A stretch of DNA of 63,055 nucleotides, filler included, from Reticulomyxa filosa (Eukaryota > Protista > Foraminifera), in NCBI GenBank assembly GCA_000512085.1. It is 18 parts of 18 records of this genome, joined end to end, with 100 filler letters (N's around TTAATTAATTAA, not from the genome) between each part and the next. Parts side by side here need not be neighbours in the genome. Positions count along the whole stretch, not along the records: positions 1 to 12,242 come from ASPP01007509.1; 17 more parts are not named here. One strand, 5' to 3'. Position numbers and translations under genes: made by a program. Positions 1 through 12,242 of the stretch are shown here, one piece after another; the stretch's first letter is position 1; each line of letters starts with the position of its first letter. The notes below the pieces were generated by a model that saw only the letters and a program-made list of their open reading frames with translations, was not told the DNA's origin and did no database searches.

Positions 1-89
1 AGATACTGCTAGATATCGCAGTATCTAGTTGTTTTGTACTTTTTTTCCTTCAAAAGACAACTTTTTTTTTAAAAGTTTATAGATGATGA

Positions 90-399
90 ATGATATTAAA
101 ATGATTTTTTAAAAATTAAAAAGTCAATTGTTAAAAAGAAACAAAAAGATTTAAAAAATTTTCTTAGTGATATGTTTGATTTATATATTCCTGCGAAATT
201 TCGAAAAATCATTTGAAAAACTTTGGTTTTATAATAACTTTTTCTTATGTTGACTAAAAACAATTTCATATTTAAAACTACAATATTTGTATATATTTTT
301 AAAAAATTATGTTTAAATGTTTATTTTTCATGAAAAAATCTATTCTCTTCATAGAGGTGCCATTTAGTTATGTCAGTTTCTTTGCAATCTACTGTAGAA
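90..399 (+). repeat. Dispersed AT-rich repeat family, copy 1
   Basis: Core 301-399 (aaaaaattatgtttaaat...caatctactgtagaa) matches 44981-45080 and 60151-60240. Confidence 0.7.
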
Positions 400-1033
400 C
401 ATTACGCAAAAGAAAGACAAAAACAATTGCAAAGCCACATGAAACCTCAATGGCCAAAAGGTCCACACAAAATAATTAAAGAAAAACATTAAAGTAATCA
501 ATTTGAATTTAGATTTATCTCATAAAAAACTTGACGATTGTTCAAATCCTCCTCTTGGTCGAATTCCATCCATTTTGAATTAGTTCCATTCAACACCAAG
601 CCTATCTGATAAAAAGCTGTTAGCGATAATAAACAAAATAAAACAATCTTAAAAATAAATCAGCAAAGACTTTTTTAAAATATAAAAAAAACAAATTTAA
701 GGAATGTGAAAACTTAAATGGATTTTCAAATCTCATTGAGCCAACGTCAATTTTGTTAAAATTCAATATCAAATAAGAGATTCAAATGTTTGAAAATTGG
801 TGATACGGACTTTAGCGTTTAAAGAAAACAAACGTAATACACATAAATCCGAAAATTTGGTTTGAAAATAGAAAGCATGTGTACAAAATTAAAAGCGAGC
901 ATATGAATGCAAATGAAAAAGGTGTAGTAGAGAGCTTTTGTTTGGACAAGAACCTGTTGGGTTTTGTGTAAGAGTGTTTAAAAAAAGTCTTGGGATTCTT
1001 TTTTGTTGTGAAACGCAAGCAAAAGCCAAAAGA

Positions 1034-2929
1034 ATGCAATCATTTCAACAGTGTTATTTTTCTGTGCCTACAACTCTTGAGAGTTTCGTTTTACCTGCGA
1101 TAAGTTGTTGGGTTGGGACGGTCTTGTACAAACCGTTCGTACCAACAAAGCTATAAAAAAAAAAAAAAAACTTGGTTGTGTGACATGTGAAGGTTTGGAC
1201 TATCAGCCAGCAATAATCCAGCCGAAACTGGGGTATCGAAGCAGTCATGAAAATGTGCACGGGGAAAATGGAACGGCCTCTCCAGTCGTGGTCATTATTG
1301 TGTTGGACAACAAGAACAATGGTACAGGCAGTAGCAACAGCAGTATCAGCAGCAGTAGTAACAGTAGCACTAGCCCTAGCAACAGCAGCAGTAGTATGAG
1401 TAGTGGCATTAGCACAGCGAATGGTGGCAATTGCGCGTACCCCTCGAACTGTATCAGTAGCATGAGCAGCAATCCATTGTCGACTCATTTGACATGTGGT
1501 TCAATTGGAAGTGCGCCACAGACGAGCTGTCTGAGTTGGGTCGGAGACCGGCTTCCGTCGATGTATCCGCGAACGAACAAAGACGTCCACGTCGTGCGCC
1601 CAGCGTCGCAGCTATGGTCCCCTCCCTACTCGTCGTACTCGTCCTACTCGTCATTCGTGTCGTTTCCGCTGCGCGAAGACGGAGCTGGCGTAGCCAAGTC
1701 GCCCAATGTACCAACCAAGCTCCCAGTGAGCACCAGTCATGACGCCACTCCTCCTTCCCCTCCTCGTCTCTACGTCGAGGCTGTTCCTCACCCGTTCCGT
1801 CCCGCCTCCTCCTCCGCCGCTGACATCATCCTCGCCGACCACGTCTCCGTCGCGACACACGTCGGCAAGTCCCAAGACATACGCAATTGCTGTTTGAAAC
1901 AGCCATCCCTTCTCGGTGCCAACACCAACGTCAACACTAACACCGAGTCTCCTTCGGACAAACCTCACAAGCTGCCCAATGCCAATATCAATACCAGCAA
2001 TGCCAATGTCAATGCCAATAATACCAATAACAAGGCCAAACATCGTGCCCACAGTATTCGTGGACAAATCTTGCAGCGATTGCAAACTGTAAAGCCTTTA
2101 GAAGACTGTCCACAAAAGCCTTGGATGTGTCCCGAGTGTAATTGTCGCTACACCACTTTCAATGGATTGCAATCACACTTTCGAATTCATACTGAATGGT
2201 AATGCGCTAATGTTGTCGTTCTTGTTCTTGTGTTCTTGTTGTGTAAGAGAAAAAAAGGCTTTCTGCGTTTATTTGTACATGTACATTGTCATATATACAT
2301 ACTTTTTTTTTTTTTTTTGCTCCAGTGAGACGTATACTCAGTTCAATTTTTTTATTTAAAAAAAAAACTTGTAGAAACAATATAACTTTTTTTGGGGGGG
2401 GATGGCTATACGAAAGGTGCTTCAAATGTGAGACATGCAATCGTCGGTTTGCCCGGAGCCGTGATTTTCAAGAGCATATGCGTGTACACACCAATGAAAG
2501 ACCTTTCGTTTGTCGATTTTGTCATAAAGGATTTAAACAGCGCCACAAGTTTGGCTTTTTTTTTAAGAGGGAGAAATAACTGCGTAATTTTTCATTCTTT
2601 CGTTCTTTTTTTTTCTTTCCTTTTTTTTTTTCTTTCCTTTTTTTCTTACCCCCTCGCTTTCCTCCCTGCTTTATTGATATTCTTCCAACAGCCAACAACA
2701 AAAAAAATAGCTTAAAGGACCACGAAAGAACTCATACTCGAGAAGATCTCTTTGCTTGCGATATTTGCCATAAAACGGTAAAAGCGCTTTTTTTTTCTAC
2801 TTTTGTTTTTTTTTTTTTACGTATCAAAAAATGAAAACAAATAAAAATAATAACTAAAAAAAAAAACAATGACAGTTTGTGGCGAAACATAACATGAAAA
2901 ATCACCGAAAGTTGCACTCAAACAATTAA
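1034..2929 (+). CDS. C2H2 zinc-finger transcription factor (4 fingers, Ser/Asn-rich N-terminal region), multi-exon; start codon uncertain
   Basis: Manual splicing gives CPECNCRYTTFNGLQSHFRIH, CETCNRRFARSRDFQEHMRVH-TNERPF-VCRFCHKGFKQRHNLKDHERTH and CDICHKTFVAKHNMKNHRKLH, ending at TAA 2927-2929. GT-AG introns lie near 2199-2417, 2549-2710 and 2778-2875. Confidence 0.85.
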
Positions 2930-5042
2930 ATTTGTCTCTTTATCTCTTTCTTGGATTTGTGCGTGGGATTTTCTGGCGTTTTTCTGTTGTTTTTGTTTTA
3001 TTTTTTGTTTTGTTTTTCTTTTTGTTTTGTCTTTTTTCCTTTTTTTGTCTTTGTTTTGTTATTTTGTGCTTAGTTTTGAATTTCTTTGTTTTTATTTGTA
3101 GTTGTTGTAGTGAAGGTGGGGGTGGATTAAAAGGGAAAAAAAGGTGAATTTGAGATACTGGTTAACAAACAAACAAGTTTTTTTTGGTAACAATCCACCG
3201 ACACAGTTGAACTATCATTTATTAGCACTAAGTGATTGGGTTGGTTTGTTTGTTTTCCTTGGAAGTGGATGTAGCTTTGTTTTGTCGTTTTTTTTCTGTT
3301 CTTTATTTTTTTGTACTTGGTTTCTGCTGTTTGGTCCAGCGCAACGTTTTGGTCTTGGATTCTTTTGTTTATTGCTGTTTATTTGTTTGTTTGTTGTTTT
3401 TTTTTTTCTTCTTTTTCTCTTTTTCCAGTTCCAACTTCTTTTGAATAAATACTACTAACAAAAAATTTTTTAAAATTGAGCACTAATGATTGTCATATCC
3501 ATTGTTTTATTTTTTCTTGATAAACCGTGGTCACTTTTTTTTACTGGCATTATCGGTTTCTGGCCATACATACAAGACTTTTTTTAATGACAACGAAGCG
3601 CGGCTGTACACGAGGCAACAAATCTTCATGCAGTTTCCCACATTCATGTTACGCCCAACTAGTGTTCAAAACAACCACTTCGGAATGGAACACACTTTAA
3701 AAAAGCAGATGTTAAAAACGATAATTTAAAGCGTCAAATAGCCCCTACATAGTAATTATTTAAAATACATAAGCGTTTCGTTTTGGCAAAAGCTTATTAA
3801 GAAACGTTTTGACGTTGGACTCTAATAGGCCAAATTCGTCCATCTTAAAAAGATTTTTCCAAAGTGAGATACAGAATTTTATTCGTGCATAAACGATCAT
3901 GACTATTTTTTGCCGGAGTGTTTATGCTGGTTTGTTTCGCTTTTTTCTTATTTCATAGTACAAATTATCTTATTTATCCCGATTATAAAAGATTTCGGTG
4001 TCCTCAGTACTCAAAAAATGGACCCCTTGATAAAACTCATCGCTGCCAACCAGTAGGCTGGGAGGGTATACAGCAAATACACTAACTCTTATAATGGAAG
4101 AAGATAACAGCTCGGCCCAATGAAACCTCTTTGTAACTTCATAGTTTTGATACTCTCAAAACTTTGTTTGGTGTGGATTTGGCTTTGGAGTCCACTGAAC
4201 TATCTTAGCAAAAATAAAACTGTAGCATTTGTTTTCATTTTTTGTAAGAACTCTGGAAAGTGGTAGTGCCAATTCTGACTCAAAGGCGCTTGTCGAAATC
4301 AATGATTTTTTTGGTCGTGCTGCCACATATGACGTTTGTTTTTTGTCCCGTTGCCAATGGCACGAATACCTTCTTAAAATTCAAAATCAAACAGCAACTG
4401 GATGGAAATATCAAGTTAGAGCTTTTTTTAAGAAAGATGGAGTCAGAAAGTAACAATATACAAAAATTAATGTATTTGAATTTTTGCCAACGCTAGCAGC
4501 GAAAAGGTGACATATTCGCTATAACTCAATTGTTAGGCCATTTATGTATTAAACAGTCCCCAAGTTGCAATTTGTCTATTCTGCTTTGAAATAATTCGTT
4601 TTTTTATGACTGTTATCAAATTTAATCATTTTTTTTTTATTCCAAACTCTGACAAACTCGAACTGCCTTGGATTTCTGCAATAGCTCAGCTAGAGCTTTA
4701 TTTTCACTGAATGTAAACAAAAGAAGTAGTTTTGTCGATATGCAAAAATTATATTGAATAAAAGCCTAGAAATGAGCAAATGTAGCATTTCATAAAAGTC
4801 TGATGAATAGTTTGGCGAATTTCTTCACATAAAAAAACAAAAACAACATGACACACAAATGCCAATCAAATTGAACGCCTCAAAGCAGACCTAATTGCAT
4901 TGGTTTTTTGTGGCCATATGTTCCAAATCAAAAAATATGATTGTACGTATATCTAGTGATACAAAATTTCACTTTTTGTGTAAATTTTGCTAACTAAAAA
5001 AAAGTTCACCAGACATATTTCTTAAAATTCAGTTGGTGACAT

Positions 5043-6751
5043 TCATTTTAATCCTGCTTCTACCTTTTCTTCCAACAGCTCTTTATGGGTTGCTTTAAGC
5101 AGTTTTTCGGTTTCCTCATCCAACTTTTGTCCCTGATAAAATTTCAACCCAATACATATAAAAAAACGTGGGCACAATTCGAGACACAAAAAAAACAAAT
5201 AAAAACTTACCGTCACAATGTGATAATCACCATTCTTGCAAACACAAGGAAATGAAAAGATAAGTTCATCGGTAATGCCATAGCTGCCATCAGTAAACAC
5301 TCCCATAGACACATGTTCTCCCTGAAAACATTAGCAAACAATCCCATTCCATTCATATATATAGTCACAATTTAAAACAAGAAAACACATAGGCAAAAAA
5401 AAGACAAAGAAGTGTGCGTGCGTGTCTAACCTCGTGTGTTCCTTGCGCCCAATCTCGGAGGCAATCTTTGATTGCATTTGCTGCCGACATAGCAGACGAC
5501 ATTCCACGAGCGTCAATGATAGCTTTGCCACGCTGTTGAACTATCTTTGTAAAGTCACCTCGCACCCATTGTGCATCTACCTTTACTTTCTCGTATTTTC
5601 CGTTTGTCAACACTTGGGCATCGCTCACATCAGGCACTCTTTAATGATTCCATTTGATCCACATTACAAATAGTGTATACATATTGTATGTATATGCATC
5701 GTATACACGTTTGTAAGATTTTTTTTAAAAATATAATAATAACAATATTGCAAATAAAAAATAAAATAAAAACTGAGTCGAAGAATGGTTTCCCCAAATG
5801 ACAACATTTCGAACGTGAGCAACAGGCACGGACAATTTTTCAGCCAATTGTGCAAGGCCTCTGTTTTGGTCTAATCTCGTCAATGCCACAAAGTTTTTCT
5901 TTGGTATTTTCGGGGCATAATGAGCGCACACCAATGCGTTCGTGTTCACAGGATTTGCCACAACCAACACCTTTCAAACATATTTCAACCATTGCATCAT
6001 CGTGCATATATGTGTTGTTGTATGCTGTGACATCGATTGATGCGCATGCAGGTAGTATATATTACATATATACATATAAATATATATATATAAGCCGTGA
6101 TATGCAAAGTGTCAATCTTTGCCAAACAAAGTGTTCTGTGCTATGTTTAACTTTGCAAGTTTTTTTGGCGTATTTTTCTAATCCTTCGCCCATCGCCTTA
6201 AATATTGGCGAATTTTTTTCCATCAGTTGTTTTCTTTCCATGCCCGCTTGTCTTGGAAAGCCGCCCACTAATACTGCGTAATCAATGTCTTTGAAAGCCT
6301 AAATCCACAATCATCATTACTCATTATTATTATCATTTTTTTTTTCAATTGTTCTCTCCCCCCCCCTCTTTGCTTCTTTTCTTTCATTCATCGCGTGTTT
6401 CGATGTCATATAATATACAAAATCCCAAAAGAAAAGTGACGCGATTCTGCGGGGTTGTGTCAGTGGAGGAAACGCCCCCTTTTTTTTTTGTTAAACTTCT
6501 TCAGCTCTGAATGTTGCTACAACTTTTCGTACTAAGGGATACGCACCGTCTGTAATTTCCATTGCCACACCATTCAATGATTTCATTGCATTCTCAATCT
6601 CCAACAAGTGCAATTCGACCGGTTGGTTTGGACCAAACACCAAACCACTTGCGAACAGTGGGATGACCGCATATCCAATTTGTCCTGCTGCACCACTGAT
6701 GAGAATACGTACTGGCTTGTCACTGTGACTCTCTTTGTGTTCAGACGCCAT
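5043..6751 (-). CDS. MDH1: Cytosolic-type NAD-dependent malate dehydrogenase, 6 exons
   Basis: Motifs [64 protein letters not shown] and FSFPC. Five GT-AG introns join these in frame. Confidence 0.95.
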
Positions 6752-7142
6752 CTTTTTTCGGAAGAATTTATTCTTTAGAGTTTTTTAAAAACTTTAGGAA
6801 CAAGTACTCGTGCTGAAAACAATCAACAAAAAGCGAGTGAGCTTCTTATTTCAAACTACAAACATTTAAATACCATTGCACTAAATTTTATACTTGCTTA
6901 TTTGAGAAAAATATCAATGGCTTTTTAAATATTGCATTACTTTGTTATCCATACACTGAACAACAATCACCACAATTTCTTTTTTTCTTTATCTATACAT
7001 TTTACTATGTCACCAAATAACTTTTACATCGTTGTCTTTATTGTTCCACACAACCCATTCAAAAGTAAAAATTTTTTGGACGGAAAAAACATTCATTTTT
7101 GGCAAACATTATCGAACCTTAAATCACTGACTACATTGCAAA

Positions 7143-9506
7143 ATGTCGTTGTTCACTGTATATGTGGAAGATGGAGCAAAAGTGCGTTCACTAGTGTTGC
7201 CAGAGCAAAATGTTGAGAGGACAACTAACGAGAGAGACGACTGTTATGCAGAAAAAAAAGAAATAAATAGGCAGCCAACATTACCGTGTAAAGTAAAGTA
7301 TCCATTGGTGTTGTTGACTGGGGCAATTAAATACCTGCAACACCAAAGTTATTTAGAGTGGGTTAAATATGATCTCAATTTATTGCAAATATTATTCCAA
7401 TCGAAACTTAATTATCAAGTATTTAATACTTATAATCTACAAAATACAAAAACTGAATTACTCACTTTAAATGAGTTGGATAATTTTATTTTGAATGCAA
7501 TTGATAAAGATAATAAAGATTGTGATGGGTTGATTTTTGTGTGGTGTGGATATGGAAGATCCGAAAGAGATAGAGAAACATTGATCACAAGTGATAACAA
7601 AATGAAAGATTTCAAAGAAATTCAAAATGATCTTATTGGAAAGACAAACTATTTTGTCGGAAAGCCAAAAATATTTATTAAAATAACATGTAAAGAACAA
7701 GATGACTTTGGTCAAGTCACAGCCAATCAAAAAAATATATTGTATAGGTGTCATGAAGATATATTTACAATTTGTGCAGATGTACCTAGAACATCAATCA
7801 TTAATAGCGCAGGGAGTTATTTCACAGAGATATTTTGTCGAGGTATCGAAGGCAATATAGGCAAAAGTTTGGAGTGTATTGTGAAAAGTATATTTGCTCA
7901 GATATCAGAAAAGGCAATTGTGCAAAGTGTTTCCACTCCCCGTTTTGACATTTATTTGATCCCGAGAACACGACAACATCACATTGAAAATGACCGATCA
8001 TCCATTGTCAAGAAAGACAATATTCCACAGACATTAGACTTGAAGACGCATTGGAATAAGTATTGGAGAAGAGCAAACGTGGAAGCTGCAAAAATAATGA
8101 AAAAAATGATGGATGGCAATGAACAGGGATTGATTGTTGTTGCGTATAATACACCTGAATGGAAAGGTGCGAGGGATAATCCATTTTCATTTGTCACATT
8201 AATGAATAAAGACAATGTGATCAAAAAACAATTTGGATCATATTGGTTATATGCGACGAAAAGTGAATTGGTGATTTTAGAGGATATATATGTCGATGGA
8301 AATATATATGAAAGTAATTGCAAACTCGTATGTAAAGAAAATGTAAATATTACAATTCAAATATTTGTTATGACAAAATCTGTTATTGATCAACAATTGC
8401 AACAATTGTTTTCATTTGTTCAATGGGACACCAAAATACATCACGATATTCCAATACAACTCCAAGAGTTGGAAGAAAAAAAAGAAGAATGCTTAGCAAA
8501 AGAGCTCTTGGATGATTCCATTGTGCATTTACAAAAATATTTACAATTGTGTATTGACACATTCGGATGTAATCATCCCTATGTTGCCATTTCATATAAT
8601 CTACTTGGAATTACCTATTTTGATAAGAAACAACAAGATGAATCCATTGAAATTTTTGAAAAAGCTTTGAAAATTGTATTAAATAATTTTGGAAATAATT
8701 GCAATATCATTACCTTATTATACAACAATCTAGGCGGTGCATACGCAGATAAAAATCAATACGATGAAGCAATTGCATATCACCAAAAAGCATTGACAAT
8801 TGAATCGTGTAATGACGGAGATATTGCCACGACATATTATTGTTTGGGACACACATACAGAAAACAAAGTGAACATAATAAAGCTATTGAATTTTATGAA
8901 AAGGCATTGGCGATCAAATTGAAGCTCTTTGGAGATTTTCATGAAGAAATTGCAAATTTGTATTATAACTTGGCAAGCGTGTATCAAGATACAACCCAAT
9001 ACAATAAAGCAATCCAACTCTATGAAAAGGCATTGCTAATCAAATTGAAAGTGTTTGGAGCTTCTCACGGAAGCGTTGCCGATTTGTACTATGATTTGGC
9101 GAGTGTTTATCAAGACGCAATGGAATATGAAAATGCAATTGAATATAACCAAAAAGCATTAAACATTGAGTTAGTGCTTTTTGGAAAGAATAACAGTAAA
9201 GTGGCTGATTCTTACAACAATTTAGGTAGCTGTTACGAAGACATTGAACAAAATACAGAGGCAATTGAATGCTATAAGCAAGCATTACAAATAAAAAAAG
9301 AGATATTTAAAGGACCAAATAAATCTATTGGAGATTCACTTTGGAATTTGGGACGCGTATTTAACAAGATAGGAGAAACTCAAGCTTCATGCAAATATTT
9401 TGAAGAGTCGTGGAAAACATATCATATCGTATTCGGAGAATGGGATAGATTGACAGTGGAATCGAAAAAAAGAGTAGAAGAGCATTTAATAATGAACAAC
9501 ATCTGA
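7143..9506 (+). CDS. Caspase-like (peptidase C14 fold) domain + C-terminal 42-aa TPR array, intronless, 787 aa
   Basis: DGLIFVWCGYG and GKPKIFIKITCKE correspond to the caspase His (SHG) and Cys (KPKIFIIQACRG) motifs. About 8 kinesin-light-chain-like TPRs follow (SYNNLG...Y...A.E.Y.KAL.I). Confidence 0.8.
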   Translation: MSLFTVYVEDGAKVRSLVLPEQNVERTTNERDDCYAEKKEINRQPTLPCKVKYPLVLLTGAIKYLQHQSYLEWVKYDLNLLQILFQSKLNYQVFNTYNLQNTKTELLTLNELDNFILNAIDKDNKDCDGLIFVWCGYGRSERDRETLITSDNKMKDFKEIQNDLIGKTNYFVGKPKIFIKITCKEQDDFGQVTANQKNILYRCHEDIFTICADVPRTSIINSAGSYFTEIFCRGIEGNIGKSLECIVKSIFAQISEKAIVQSVSTPRFDIYLIPRTRQHHIENDRSSIVKKDNIPQTLDLKTHWNKYWRRANVEAAKIMKKMMDGNEQGLIVVAYNTPEWKGARDNPFSFVTLMNKDNVIKKQFGSYWLYATKSELVILEDIYVDGNIYESNCKLVCKENVNITIQIFVMTKSVIDQQLQQLFSFVQWDTKIHHDIPIQLQELEEKKEECLAKELLDDSIVHLQKYLQLCIDTFGCNHPYVAISYNLLGITYFDKKQQDESIEIFEKALKIVLNNFGNNCNIITLLYNNLGGAYADKNQYDEAIAYHQKALTIESCNDGDIATTYYCLGHTYRKQSEHNKAIEFYEKALAIKLKLFGDFHEEIANLYYNLASVYQDTTQYNKAIQLYEKALLIKLKVFGASHGSVADLYYDLASVYQDAMEYENAIEYNQKALNIELVLFGKNNSKVADSYNNLGSCYEDIEQNTEAIECYKQALQIKKEIFKGPNKSIGDSLWNLGRVFNKIGETQASCKYFEESWKTYHIVFGEWDRLTVESKKRVEEHLIMNNI

Positions 9507-9579
9507 TTTTATACACTTTTTGAACAGCTGAATTATCTTTTCTCTTTTGCTATAACAAGGAGAAAAAAAAAGGAGTTCT

Positions 9580-12242
9580 TTACAATTGCAATTGGGAATA
9601 TGTTTTTTTAAGCTTTTTATCCAGTTCTTCTTCTTGATCCTTTAACTTAGTAATTTCTTTATTGATTGAATCACGAAGTTTCTGTTTTAAAACTTCGTGG
9701 TCAGTCTCAGTGCCGAGTGAGTGATCAACAGGAAGTATTGTAGTCTCCAGGCCTGGTGTTGGAATTTGTTTGGAAAATACATGTTCGGACGGCCAATGCT
9801 CACAGCTTTTGTTACATACGTATTTTTCAACATAAGAAAAACATATTATGCTAGCAACGCCTCCAACGGCCAATGTTGGAACAGCACCTGCCCAAGCAAT
9901 CGCTCCAACAAGAGCACCTTTTGCAGCCATAGCTACTCCACCACCTTTTGCAACTATCAATCCAAAGGCTCCAGCTTTAGCAGCTATGGCACCACCTCCA
10001 GCGGCTGCAGCTGTACGCAAAAATGCGGAAGCTGCAAGTTTATTGAAAACAGCACATTCTCGTATGTCATCTGTATCTCTCTTGTTGCAATTTCTGCAAC
10101 AAGATTCAGTTCCGATAGGGCATTTCAAACAGATGACATGCACCTATTGAAAAGAGAGTGTTTCGAAACAAAGCAAAAAAAAAAAACAGAGGACGTAACA
10201 AGACAAATAAACAAGTTAACTTCGTCGTTATCAGTTCGTTTCAATTTCCATGGCTTAAAAACAACTTGAAAAGTTTGGAGTTCTTCAATGGTCCGATTCT
10301 CTTTCACGATTGAATCAGAAGTGCTCTCCAATTTGCGAATCATTAACTTTATATTCTCTCCTATAATCTGGAATTGTAAACATTCCAACTTTCTTTTATT
10401 GTATTGGAACCTTTCATCTTTGAGCATTTTTCCTTGATAAAGCTTTTTATTTCATTTATATAGTGTGAAGTATATACATATGTATGTATACGTATATGGT
10501 GTATATTGGCTATAAAACTGGAAGTTTTGAGCATTTAGTCAATATTTCGTGGATCTGTTGTTTTGCCTTATCGAAAGGGGTTTTACATAGGTTTACGTTG
10601 TCTGGAGTCATGGTAAAGTTGGAGGTATATCTGGAATTGTCCATAAACACATGATCGCACGAATGCAACTCTGTCTTTTCAAGATTTTTCAAAATTTCTT
10701 TACCAGGTTCGATCAGAGTGTGTGTAAACACCACAAAGAAATTGGTTTTGGAATCGAGAGACAAATTGTCGGTATAGTGTTTAATTTGGTCTTGCAATGG
10801 TTTTGATTCTCGATTCCAAGTCCCAGGGATAGTAAAGATAACGGCATTGAATTCTATACGCTCTACAAAATCCAATATTTGTTTACGGTATTGATTGTCT
10901 TGCTCTTTTCCTTTGGGATCAAAAAAACCTGGAGTGTCAATAATATCTACATCAAAGTCTTCATTGTAATAATTGAAGATGTCACACTCGATCGATTGGC
11001 CCTCTGTGAGTTCGGGTATTATCTTGTTTCTGTTTTTACGTTCTTGCGTTTCTCGATCCGACGTTGACATTACTTCTTCAAACGATTTGTCCTCCAAATA
11101 GTCTTGAATTGCAAAGCGTAATGTCGTCTTCCCTGATCCACTTTGTCCAATTAACAATAATTTCACCTTTGTATTTCCCTTTATCGACATTACATCTCTA
11201 ATTTTTTTTAAATTTATATTTATTCTTTATATTGCAAATTGTTTGCTTTCAACAAATAGCGAACCTCAAAATTCCTTTCAATTCGTTTTTCCATTCCTTT
11301 TGTATTTTCAAACTTGGACTGGGTCTACCTTCCATCTTTCGTTTTACTGCGTCTATGCTCTTACGCAGTGGTCCTCTTTTTGGCGATTTTTTGAGCTTGT
11401 TCACTTTTGCTTCAACTGTTTCGAGCAATTCTCTAATCTCTCTTTTTATTTCTGTTTCCACTTCTTTCTTTTCATCTTCGTCCTCCTCGATTTTTTCCTC
11501 CTCTTTTTTTCTTCTTCTTTTTTTTCTGCCTCTTTTTCATCGTCCCATATCACGTCCAAGTGCGTCATCGACTGATCCGCTTGCATTTTACTGCCCAGTA
11601 TCATCGCATGAATTACTGTCCCTTGCATAACTGCACTATTGCAATGCTTGTCGACGCACACATCTGAAATGCCTACATGCTTTTCGATCAACTCACGGAG
11701 TTTGGGAATCTTGGTGCACCCTCCAACCAAATATACTGCGTCTATGTCTGTTTTGAATGTCCCTCCTTTTTCCAATACCTCATCCACACTCTGCAAGCAT
11801 TTCAAAAAATGATCTTTGCAGAGCTCTTCAAATCTTTATTTTGTTTTGTTTTTACATTCATATTACATATACATATATATATATACATATATGTATATAT
11901 ACTTAGTGCGAGAAAGGTTAAATTGAAAGTTTTTTCCTTGATGGAAATCGCGAATTACTTTTTTATATGTTTTTTGAGTGCTCAGTTTTGCTTGTGCCTC
12001 AACACAATGACTACGTAGTATCTCCACGACCTTTACGTCTCGGGTTAATTCGTCGTAGTGATCTTTGTTATTGTTTGTAAACTGTCCGGCCATATACGCA
12101 ACCAATCGATTGGTTATGTCTTCGCCTCCAAACTTGACACTTTCTGTCACCGCTTCCATTTTGATTTTCTTCTCTTCAATGTGTGCCAAAGACACACCCA
12201 ACTTCCCACTTCCCCAATCCACAATCACCACTTTTTTGCTCG
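9580..12242 (-). CDS. 5'-truncated multi-exon fusion gene: Hsp70-like NBD + acidic linker + AIG1/GIMAP/septin-like P-loop GTPase + Cys-rich/glycine-zipper region + coiled coil
   Basis: Hsp70 motifs: VIVDWGSG, FGGEDITNRLV, LSRTKFEELC, YLVGGCTKIPK. GTPase motifs: GQSGSGKT, DTPG, VVFTH. Introns 11902-11834, 11264-11198, 10518-10443 and 10220-10144 are all GT..AG and phase-compatible. A 1-nt shift is needed in the A-run at 11504-11525. Confidence 0.7.

Follow-up and report, generated by a model that had tools for sequence, protein, structure and literature searches.

The DNA analysed here (the window) is a stretch of 63,055 nucleotides from the foraminifer Reticulomyxa filosa, joined from 18 parts of the draft genome GCA_000512085.1. 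The locus in question is located in its first part, positions 1-12242, which is the whole of contig ASPP01007509.1, an AT-rich piece of eukaryotic DNA in which introns are short. Within 9580-12242, GenBank annotates two minus-strand genes, namely, an HSP70 fragment of 228 amino acids (aa) (12201-11446) and RFI_10116 (11335-9580), a hypothetical protein of 506 aa. A preliminary description had joined six minus-strand open reading frames (ORFs) across the same region into one hidden gene, in which an Hsp70 ATPase domain was followed by an AIG1/GIMAP-like GTPase, a Cys/His-rich region, a glycine zipper, and a terminal coiled coil. All six ORFs are present on the contig, but the gene was not hidden, as both pieces were already in GenBank. 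In the present analysis, RFI_10116 was assigned to a eukaryotic GTPase family that is large but unstudied, and a corrected gene model was obtained for it. The exons were searched singly, and joining across introns was performed by script only, for stop counts and phases.

G domain and C-terminal modules of RFI_10116

The G domain is encoded by one minus-strand exon (10519-11197), in which the P-loop GQSGSGKT (11148-11125), the switch-I region GQSIEC (11001-10984), the DTPG motif (10938-10927), and, at the G4 position, VFTHT (10731-10717) were located. When this exon was compared with Pfam, MMR_HSR1 scored 24.3 bits, which is above its cut-off of 21.9. AIG1 (PF04548) reached 20.3 bits, below its cut-off of 27, and Septin (PF00735) reached 21.0 bits, below its cut-off of 26.2 and over the first 77 profile positions only. 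However, AIG1 was matched at E<=0.001 by 26 of 30 relatives. An AlphaFold model of the domain, built on 60 relatives, had a predicted local distance difference test (pLDDT) score of 93, and its top Foldseek matches in the PDB were GIMAP7, Toc34, GIMAP2, and Toc33. The proposed GTPase was confirmed by the MMR_HSR1 score and the fold matches, and this fold comparison supports its AIG1/GIMAP-like character.

The G1 (GQSGSGKT) and G3 (DTPG) motifs are canonical, and G15, G18, G20, P87, and G88 are invariant in the 60 relatives. The Asp of G4, which would be expected within [NT]KxD or T-x-S-D, is absent. The sequence at this position is F-T-H-T-L here and T-F-S-T or T-S-S-I in the Reticulomyxa paralogs, while T-F-S-D is kept in the Ammonia and Darwinula relatives. 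Because the G4 Asp is missing, guanine specificity is not assured.

When the G-domain exon was used in an exhaustive phmmer search, 318 relatives were returned. The four closest are Reticulomyxa paralogs (P0002 to P0005, from contigs L003, L004, L005, and L002). Other relatives were found in the foraminifer Ammonia (transcriptome), Dictyostelium purpureum, a coral, and an ostracod, with phmmer E values down to 1e-13 outside Reticulomyxa, and Atlas clusters add fungi, arthropods, rotifers, molluscs, and chordates. These relatives are automatically named "AIG1-type" or "Septin-type G domain-containing protein". The likeness extends beyond the G domain in Dictyostelium purpureum DICPUDRAFT_150025 and Ammonia sp. 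CAMPEP_0197074478, which have the same helical stalk, the same C-x2-C...C...C...C...C-x2-3-C...H pattern, and the same following helix. From these comparisons, the succession of G domain, helical stalk or coiled coil, Cys/His module, and coiled coil defines a widespread, uncharacterised eukaryotic family. Thus, the architecture, which the preliminary description had not recognised, is in its GTPase, coiled-coil, and Cys-module part known across foraminifers, Dictyostelium, fungi, and many animals. Other N-terminal domains also occur in the family, namely, SAM in P0053 and fn3 and thioredoxin in Atlas clusters.

A charged helical stalk, encoded by exon 5 (10221-10442, minus strand), connects the G domain to the Cys module. 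The frame of this exon is open and is present in P0001, and it had no Pfam match. Composition alone suggests a coiled-coil character for this exon.

The Cys/His module is encoded in exon 6, in two halves. The first half, C-x2-C-x6-C-C-x2-C ... C (10054-10143, minus strand), was modelled at a pLDDT of ~85-88, and the second half, C-x3-C-x-H-x5-H (9781-9816, minus strand), at ~86. In a pattern scan of the sequence C-terminal to the G domain, the module was located in 65 of 151 stored relatives. Across the 65 aligned sequences, the exon 6 positions C5, C8, C15, C19, C110, C114, and H121 show no variation, and C30 is conserved in at least 90%. The Cys/His-rich region of the earlier proposal was thereby borne out, with eight conserved ligand positions in at least 65 relatives. 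Neither a Pfam model for the module nor a PDB match in the fold search of its model was found. The module probably binds zinc.

The two halves of the module are separated by a Gly/Ala-rich hydrophobic insert (9829-10041, minus strand) of ~70 aa, which contains 23 Ala and 13 Gly with a Lys every 8-10 residues. Its Kyte-Doolittle means over 19 residues are 1.0-1.7, and it contains 19 small-xxx-small motifs. The C-terminal end is the most hydrophobic, with a transmembrane-like hydropathy over the last ~25 residues. The insert was modelled at a pLDDT below 50. In members of the family from outside Reticulomyxa, the loop between C30 and C110 is ~10 residues long, and all of them lack the insert. 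In the Reticulomyxa paralogs, a hydrophobic insert is found at the same site, with a length of ~35 aa in L003 and ~55 aa in P0005, compared with ~70 aa here. Accordingly, the Reticulomyxa paralogs differ from the rest of the family in two respects, namely, a hydrophobic insert of ~35 to 70 aa or more and the lack of the Asp of the T-x-S-D G4-like motif.

This segment had been described as a glycine zipper. Its Gly/Ala-rich composition was confirmed, but its membership in a zipper family was not, and it is better described as a Reticulomyxa-specific insert inside a conserved Cys module. Exon 6 matched no Pfam family at E<=0.1, including the glycine-zipper families (Gly-zipper_*, Rick_17kDa_Anti) and Ifi-6-16. 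An Atlas feature search with the Gly/Ala segment returned unnamed clusters only, at scores of 0.82 or less. With no profile match and no Atlas lead, a glycine-zipper or Ifi-6-16 identity of the segment was rejected. The Cys/His module with its hydrophobic Gly/Ala insert in Reticulomyxa provides a concrete membrane-anchoring hypothesis.

The protein ends in a long helix (9580-9705, minus strand; stop codon 9582-9580), which corresponds to residues 146-185 of exon 6 and was modelled at a pLDDT of 92-98. This agrees with the terminal coiled coil proposed earlier, and the helix is a probable coiled coil.

Introns and exon model

The preliminary description had joined the ORFs through four introns, and all four are GT..AG introns that are in phase at the proposed positions. 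Introns 1, 3, and 4 are backed by homology, while intron 2 is plausible only. The introns are 69, 67, 76, and 77 nt long with 70-86% A+T, and the joined frames are free of stops on each side of the proposed frameshift, which is treated below. Their donors (GTT..., GTA...) resemble those of five introns of a malate dehydrogenase gene on the same contig.

Intron 1 (11834-11902, minus strand; 69 nt, 86% A+T) is microsatellite-like in TA/TG and is identical in the 228-aa model of GenBank. It is further corroborated because its flanking exons abut at position 298 of the HSP70 profile (186-298 and 298-389). Intron 3 (10443-10518, minus strand; 76 nt) is likewise the same in GenBank RFI_10116, and its junction (..KLP|LYQGK..) is kept in paralog P0005 (..VLP LCQGN..). 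The GenBank model of paralog P0002 reads into the intron equivalent to intron 3. As a side observation on this closest paralog, its GenBank model (369 aa) runs into that intron and stops, and the exon of its Cys/His module (L003 2876-3217, plus strand) is unannotated.

For the other two introns, GenBank chose different splice sites. In the case of intron 2 (11198-11264, minus strand; 67 nt), the donor is shared with GenBank, whose acceptor at 11225 is 27 nt upstream and leaves an intron of 40 nt. The verified introns here are all longer (63-198 nt). Paralog L004 also has an intron, which precedes its first G-domain strand by ~9 codons. The 67-nt version of intron 2 is plausible. In the case of intron 4 (10144-10220, minus strand; 77 nt, with a poly-T tract before the acceptor), the alternative splice of GenBank deletes C5, C8, and C15 of the Cys module. 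The 77-nt version is corroborated because its exon 6 start restores these three residues, which are invariant in the 65 aligned relatives. Judged by this conservation, the acceptor of the 77-nt intron is right and that of GenBank wrong. Taken as a whole, the exon model that the preliminary description gave for the GTPase gene is correct and improves the public annotation.

A TA/TG microsatellite-like stretch (..TATATACATATATGTATATATA..) was observed in introns of different genes on the minus strand (11902-11834, 10518-10443, ~6100-6040, and ~5700-5660). In ORF lists, these stretches are translated as Tyr-Ile-Tyr runs. The stretch may be a common intron element of the R. filosa genome.

Hsp70-like part and its junction with the GTPase gene

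Upstream of the GTPase, two minus-strand exons encode Hsp70-like sequence, and the 228-aa GenBank product derived from them matches Pfam HSP70 (PF00012). Exon 1 (11903-12242), which is open to the contig end, matched profile positions 186-298 (E 1.2e-12, 47.3 bits), and exon 2 (11449-11833), which covers subdomain IIA/IIB and ends at a stop codon (11448-11446), matched positions 298-389 (E 1.2e-13, 50.6 bits), against a cut-off of 20.6 bits. The contig edge at 12242 cuts the gene inside the domain, and the N-terminal ~185 profile positions are therefore off the contig. Exon 1 carries the motifs DWGSGK (12219-12202) at the phosphate-2 position and FGGED (12132-12118). In exon 2, AMILG (11607-11593) is followed by the interdomain-linker remnant THLDVIW (11565-11545) and then by a tail rich in Lys, Glu, and Arg. 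The degenerate phosphate-2 motif that had been pointed out was thus found, as the canonical D-L-G-G-G-T is replaced by DWGSGK, with Lys in place of Thr. The best solved relatives of exon 2 are the ATPase domains of Cryptosporidium Hsp70, BiP, and HSPA1A in the PDB.

No HSP70 match to the substrate-binding domain (profile ~390-599) was found in the linker, G-domain, exon 5, or exon 6 ORFs. The earlier claim of an Hsp70 ATPase domain that lacks a substrate-binding domain was confirmed to this extent, with profile positions 186-389 matched and nothing HSP70-like downstream. The ATPase domain is strongly divergent but intact over the part borne by the contig. The animal protein HSPA13/STCH is an Hsp70 protein with an ATPase domain only, and both this protein and the HSP70s of prokaryotic conflict systems likewise have the ATPase domain without a substrate-binding domain.

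Word-index protein searches with Hsp70 exon 1, exon 2, and RFI_10116 returned self only or nothing; therefore, no close relative of the Hsp70 fragment of comparable length is present in that index. A search of sequencing runs with the stretch found no RNA run that contains it, and the sole match was a 171-nt contig from a synthetic metagenome. This identical 171-nt contig was observed in two "synthetic metagenome" runs (2020), which contain 11928-12098, within Hsp70 exon 1, and no other part of the stretch. It probably derives from simulated or spiked reads of the R. filosa assembly.

The Hsp70-like part and the GTPase would be connected by a linker ORF (11265-11536, minus strand). This interval comprises 90 of its 95 open codons, is Lys/Glu-rich and then helical, and had no Pfam match. 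Its first ATG, at 11335, is the annotated start of RFI_10116. Over 90 nt (11447-11536, minus strand), the Hsp70 and linker frames are both open, and this overlap contains runs of eight, seven, and six A residues (A8 11525-11518, A7 11510-11504, and A6 11496-11491). In the assembly, the Hsp70 frame ends at the stop at 11448-11446, while the linker frame has a stop at 11539-11537 and is open only from 11536, and the two frames are one base apart. An uninterrupted spliced frame from Hsp70 to the GTPase does not exist in the assembled sequence and would require one more base within 11447-11536. The 1-nt shift in a homopolymer run, by which the ORFs had been connected, was an assumption and was not seen in the sequence. 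The single fused gene depends on this unverified base correction and finds no support from relatives.

Accordingly, the locus is preferably read as two neighbouring minus-strand genes, as in GenBank, a truncated Hsp70-like gene and RFI_10116, and to this reading about an even chance is assigned. The first would be the 3' two-thirds of a divergent, ATPase-domain-only Hsp70-like gene, truncated by the contig edge and finishing with a short charged tail. The second would be RFI_10116, located 110-250 bp downstream. The malate dehydrogenase gene and the L003 paralog have start contexts like that of the ATG at 11335 (gaaagATGg). With this ATG as the start, 41 aa precede the P-loop strand, compared with 47 aa in the closest paralog, on L003. 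That paralog starts at its own ATG, and the 1.6 kb upstream of it are riddled with stops. In the case of P0005, there is no room for an Hsp70 because an SBDS gene on the opposite strand lies ~400 bp upstream. Searches by tblastn for Hsp70 at the paralog loci found none in any, and no Hsp70-like sequence was present among the best 150 of the 318 G-domain relatives; the HSP70 and AIG1 fusion was therefore seen in none of these proteins. The transcript-derived Ammonia homologue P0008 starts ~60 aa before the P-loop and lacks Hsp70. Among the family loci examined, an Hsp70 gene directly upstream was found only here.

Several observations weigh against two separate genes. Both parts are on the same strand, and only 110 bp separate the Hsp70 stop from the annotated ATG, compared with a median intergenic distance of 426 bp in the genome (table, PMC13746701). 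The linker frame is open for 95 codons (P ~0.003-0.014 in shuffles). It is already open for 67 codons ahead of its first ATG (P=0.023), with an overlap of 30 codons with the Hsp70 ORF, and the codon-usage log-odds are positive in the supposedly intergenic 11446-11336. The A8, A7, and A6 runs, a classic site of base-calling error, are exactly within the overlap. An ATPase-only Hsp70 with a charged tail of 48 aa would itself be unusual.

These observations can be explained by one fused gene in which the frame break is an under-called A-run. Of its product, ~790 aa would be encoded on the contig, and the total would come to roughly 980 aa once the missing N-terminus is counted. The fusion would be confined to this locus, and read-through from an Hsp70-like gene upstream into 5' sequence of the GTPase gene could have been its origin. 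The phase of intron 2 fits such a join, and the family readily takes other N-terminal domains, such as the SAM, fn3, and thioredoxin domains mentioned above. In addition, prokaryotic conflict systems pair TRAFAC GTPases with HSP70s, some of which are without the peptide-binding domain (PMC7159879). However, the fusion needs a sequence change that nobody has observed, and it is absent from the best 150 of the 318 relatives, from the paralog loci, and from the foraminiferal homologue. The sequence under the open frame is poor in T (9%), and the chance figure of this frame has to be roughly tripled because any of the three frames would count as a join. Moreover, no significant match was obtained between the linker and the N-terminal exons of the paralogs (BLASTP E 0.21 and 4.2, hhalign E 0.5), while those of P0003 and P0005 match each other (E 2e-4). 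A single fused gene is consequently regarded as possible but rather doubtful.

A join free of any frameshift was also considered. There are 11 single GT..AG introns of 237-453 nt (e.g., donor 11461) that could link the Hsp70 and G-domain frames. They were rejected as evidence because one third of such pairs would be in phase by chance and because the significantly open linker frame would be discarded.

The meeting of two frames out of phase could also mean that no working gene structure exists here. The contig would then be a chimeric join through a purine-rich low-complexity stretch, or a real frameshift would be present in a decaying gene. The R. filosa assembly is highly fragmented, with 50,809 scaffolds, an N50 of 3.6 kb, and 30% repeats (table, PMC13746701), and the junction is inside a low-complexity stretch that is (GAA/AAG)n-like. 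However, both coding parts are long and intact despite their divergence, with at least 228 and ~580 stop-free codons and four correctly phased introns, which argues against decay, and no positive sign of a misjoin was found. This explanation is considered quite improbable.

If the Hsp70 join were true, an actin-fold ATPase would be linked covalently to a P-loop GTPase, which is a rare coupling. Even then, only one locus of a poorly assembled genome would be concerned, and the general significance would be limited until confirmation.

Known parallels, proposed mechanism, and neighbouring genes

The best structural matches of the G-domain model include the GIMAP/AIG1 proteins, represented by the human GIMAP2, GIMAP7, and GIMAP5 structures (Foldseek E 1.5e-8 to 1e-6, TM-scores ~0.5-0.56). 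They have the P-loop and DTPG in common with the G domain of RFI_10116, but the identity is 11-14%, RFI_10116 lacks the G4 Asp, and the GIMAPs lack the Cys/His module. Several GIMAPs have C-terminal hydrophobic anchors and undergo nucleotide-dependent dimerisation or oligomerisation on membranes. The highest TM-scores (0.57-0.64) were obtained with the chloroplast import receptors Toc34 and Toc33, GTPases of the septin/AIG1/Toc clade that are tail-anchored in the membrane and dimerise via the G domain. The Toc receptors differ in their domain order and C-terminal modules, and a heterotrophic foraminifer offers no plastid context.

GIMAP2/7 and Toc33/34 suggest by analogy that the G domains of RFI_10116 may dimerise or oligomerise on a membrane in a nucleotide-dependent manner. 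A scaffold would be provided by the helical stalk together with the C-terminal coiled coil, and the Gly/Ala-rich insert may act as a membrane anchor or hairpin. If fused to the GTPase, the Hsp70 domain would add a second nucleotide-gated module for oligomerisation or client binding. The proposal in the preliminary description that the Hsp70 domain acts as a decoy or nucleotide switch is purely conjectural.

In bacterial conflict systems, TRAFAC GTPases are found in the gene neighbourhood of HSP70s, some of them "sans peptide-binding domain" (Kaur et al. 2020, PMC7159879). These systems differ from the present locus in that they consist of separate operon genes and contain other GTPase families (DO-GTPase, GAP1-N2), and the likeness is one of domain pairing alone.

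The gene next to RFI_10116 on the other side is a 787-aa intron-less ORF (7143-9506, plus strand) for a TPR_12/NPHP3-type repeat protein, which is convergent with the GTPase gene at 73 bp from stop to stop. The N-terminal part of this TPR protein resembles a Peptidase_C14 (caspase-like) gene at L003 3722-6431 (minus strand). The pair of GTPase and caspase-like-TPR genes recurs in the paralogous contig ASPP01037773.1 (~43% protein identity), and it could reflect either a block duplication or a functional pair. The GTPase paralog on L003 converges with a caspase-like-TPR gene in such a two-gene block. The conserved pairing hints that the GTPase may have an immunity or cell-death-type role.

In the most far-reaching picture, the locus would encode one two-nucleoside-triphosphatase protein of ~980 aa, in which an Hsp70 ATPase is joined to a GIMAP/Toc34-like GTPase and to a zinc module whose Gly/Ala hairpin inserts into a membrane, next to the caspase-like-TPR gene. 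Such a protein would be a fused eukaryotic counterpart of the bacterial GTPase and HSP70 conflict systems. This picture is considered unlikely.

Further along the contig, a malate dehydrogenase gene of the cytosolic type was observed (5046-6751, minus strand), which contains five introns. The 313-aa model of this gene in GenBank starts at 6387 and appears to omit the first exon (6751-6497), which carries the GAAGQIG dinucleotide-binding motif. In its last intron (~5213-5151), no AG acceptor was found directly before the conserved exon.

Near the other end of the contig, within 1105-2579 (plus strand), a Ser/Asn/Pro-rich ORF ends in C2H2 zinc-finger motifs and encloses a GC-rich island, with 58% G+C at 1501-2000 compared with ~30-38% in the contig. 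A second ORF (2286-2579, plus strand) encodes further C2H2 fingers. The C2H2 ORFs within 1105-2579 probably represent one spliced zinc-finger gene.

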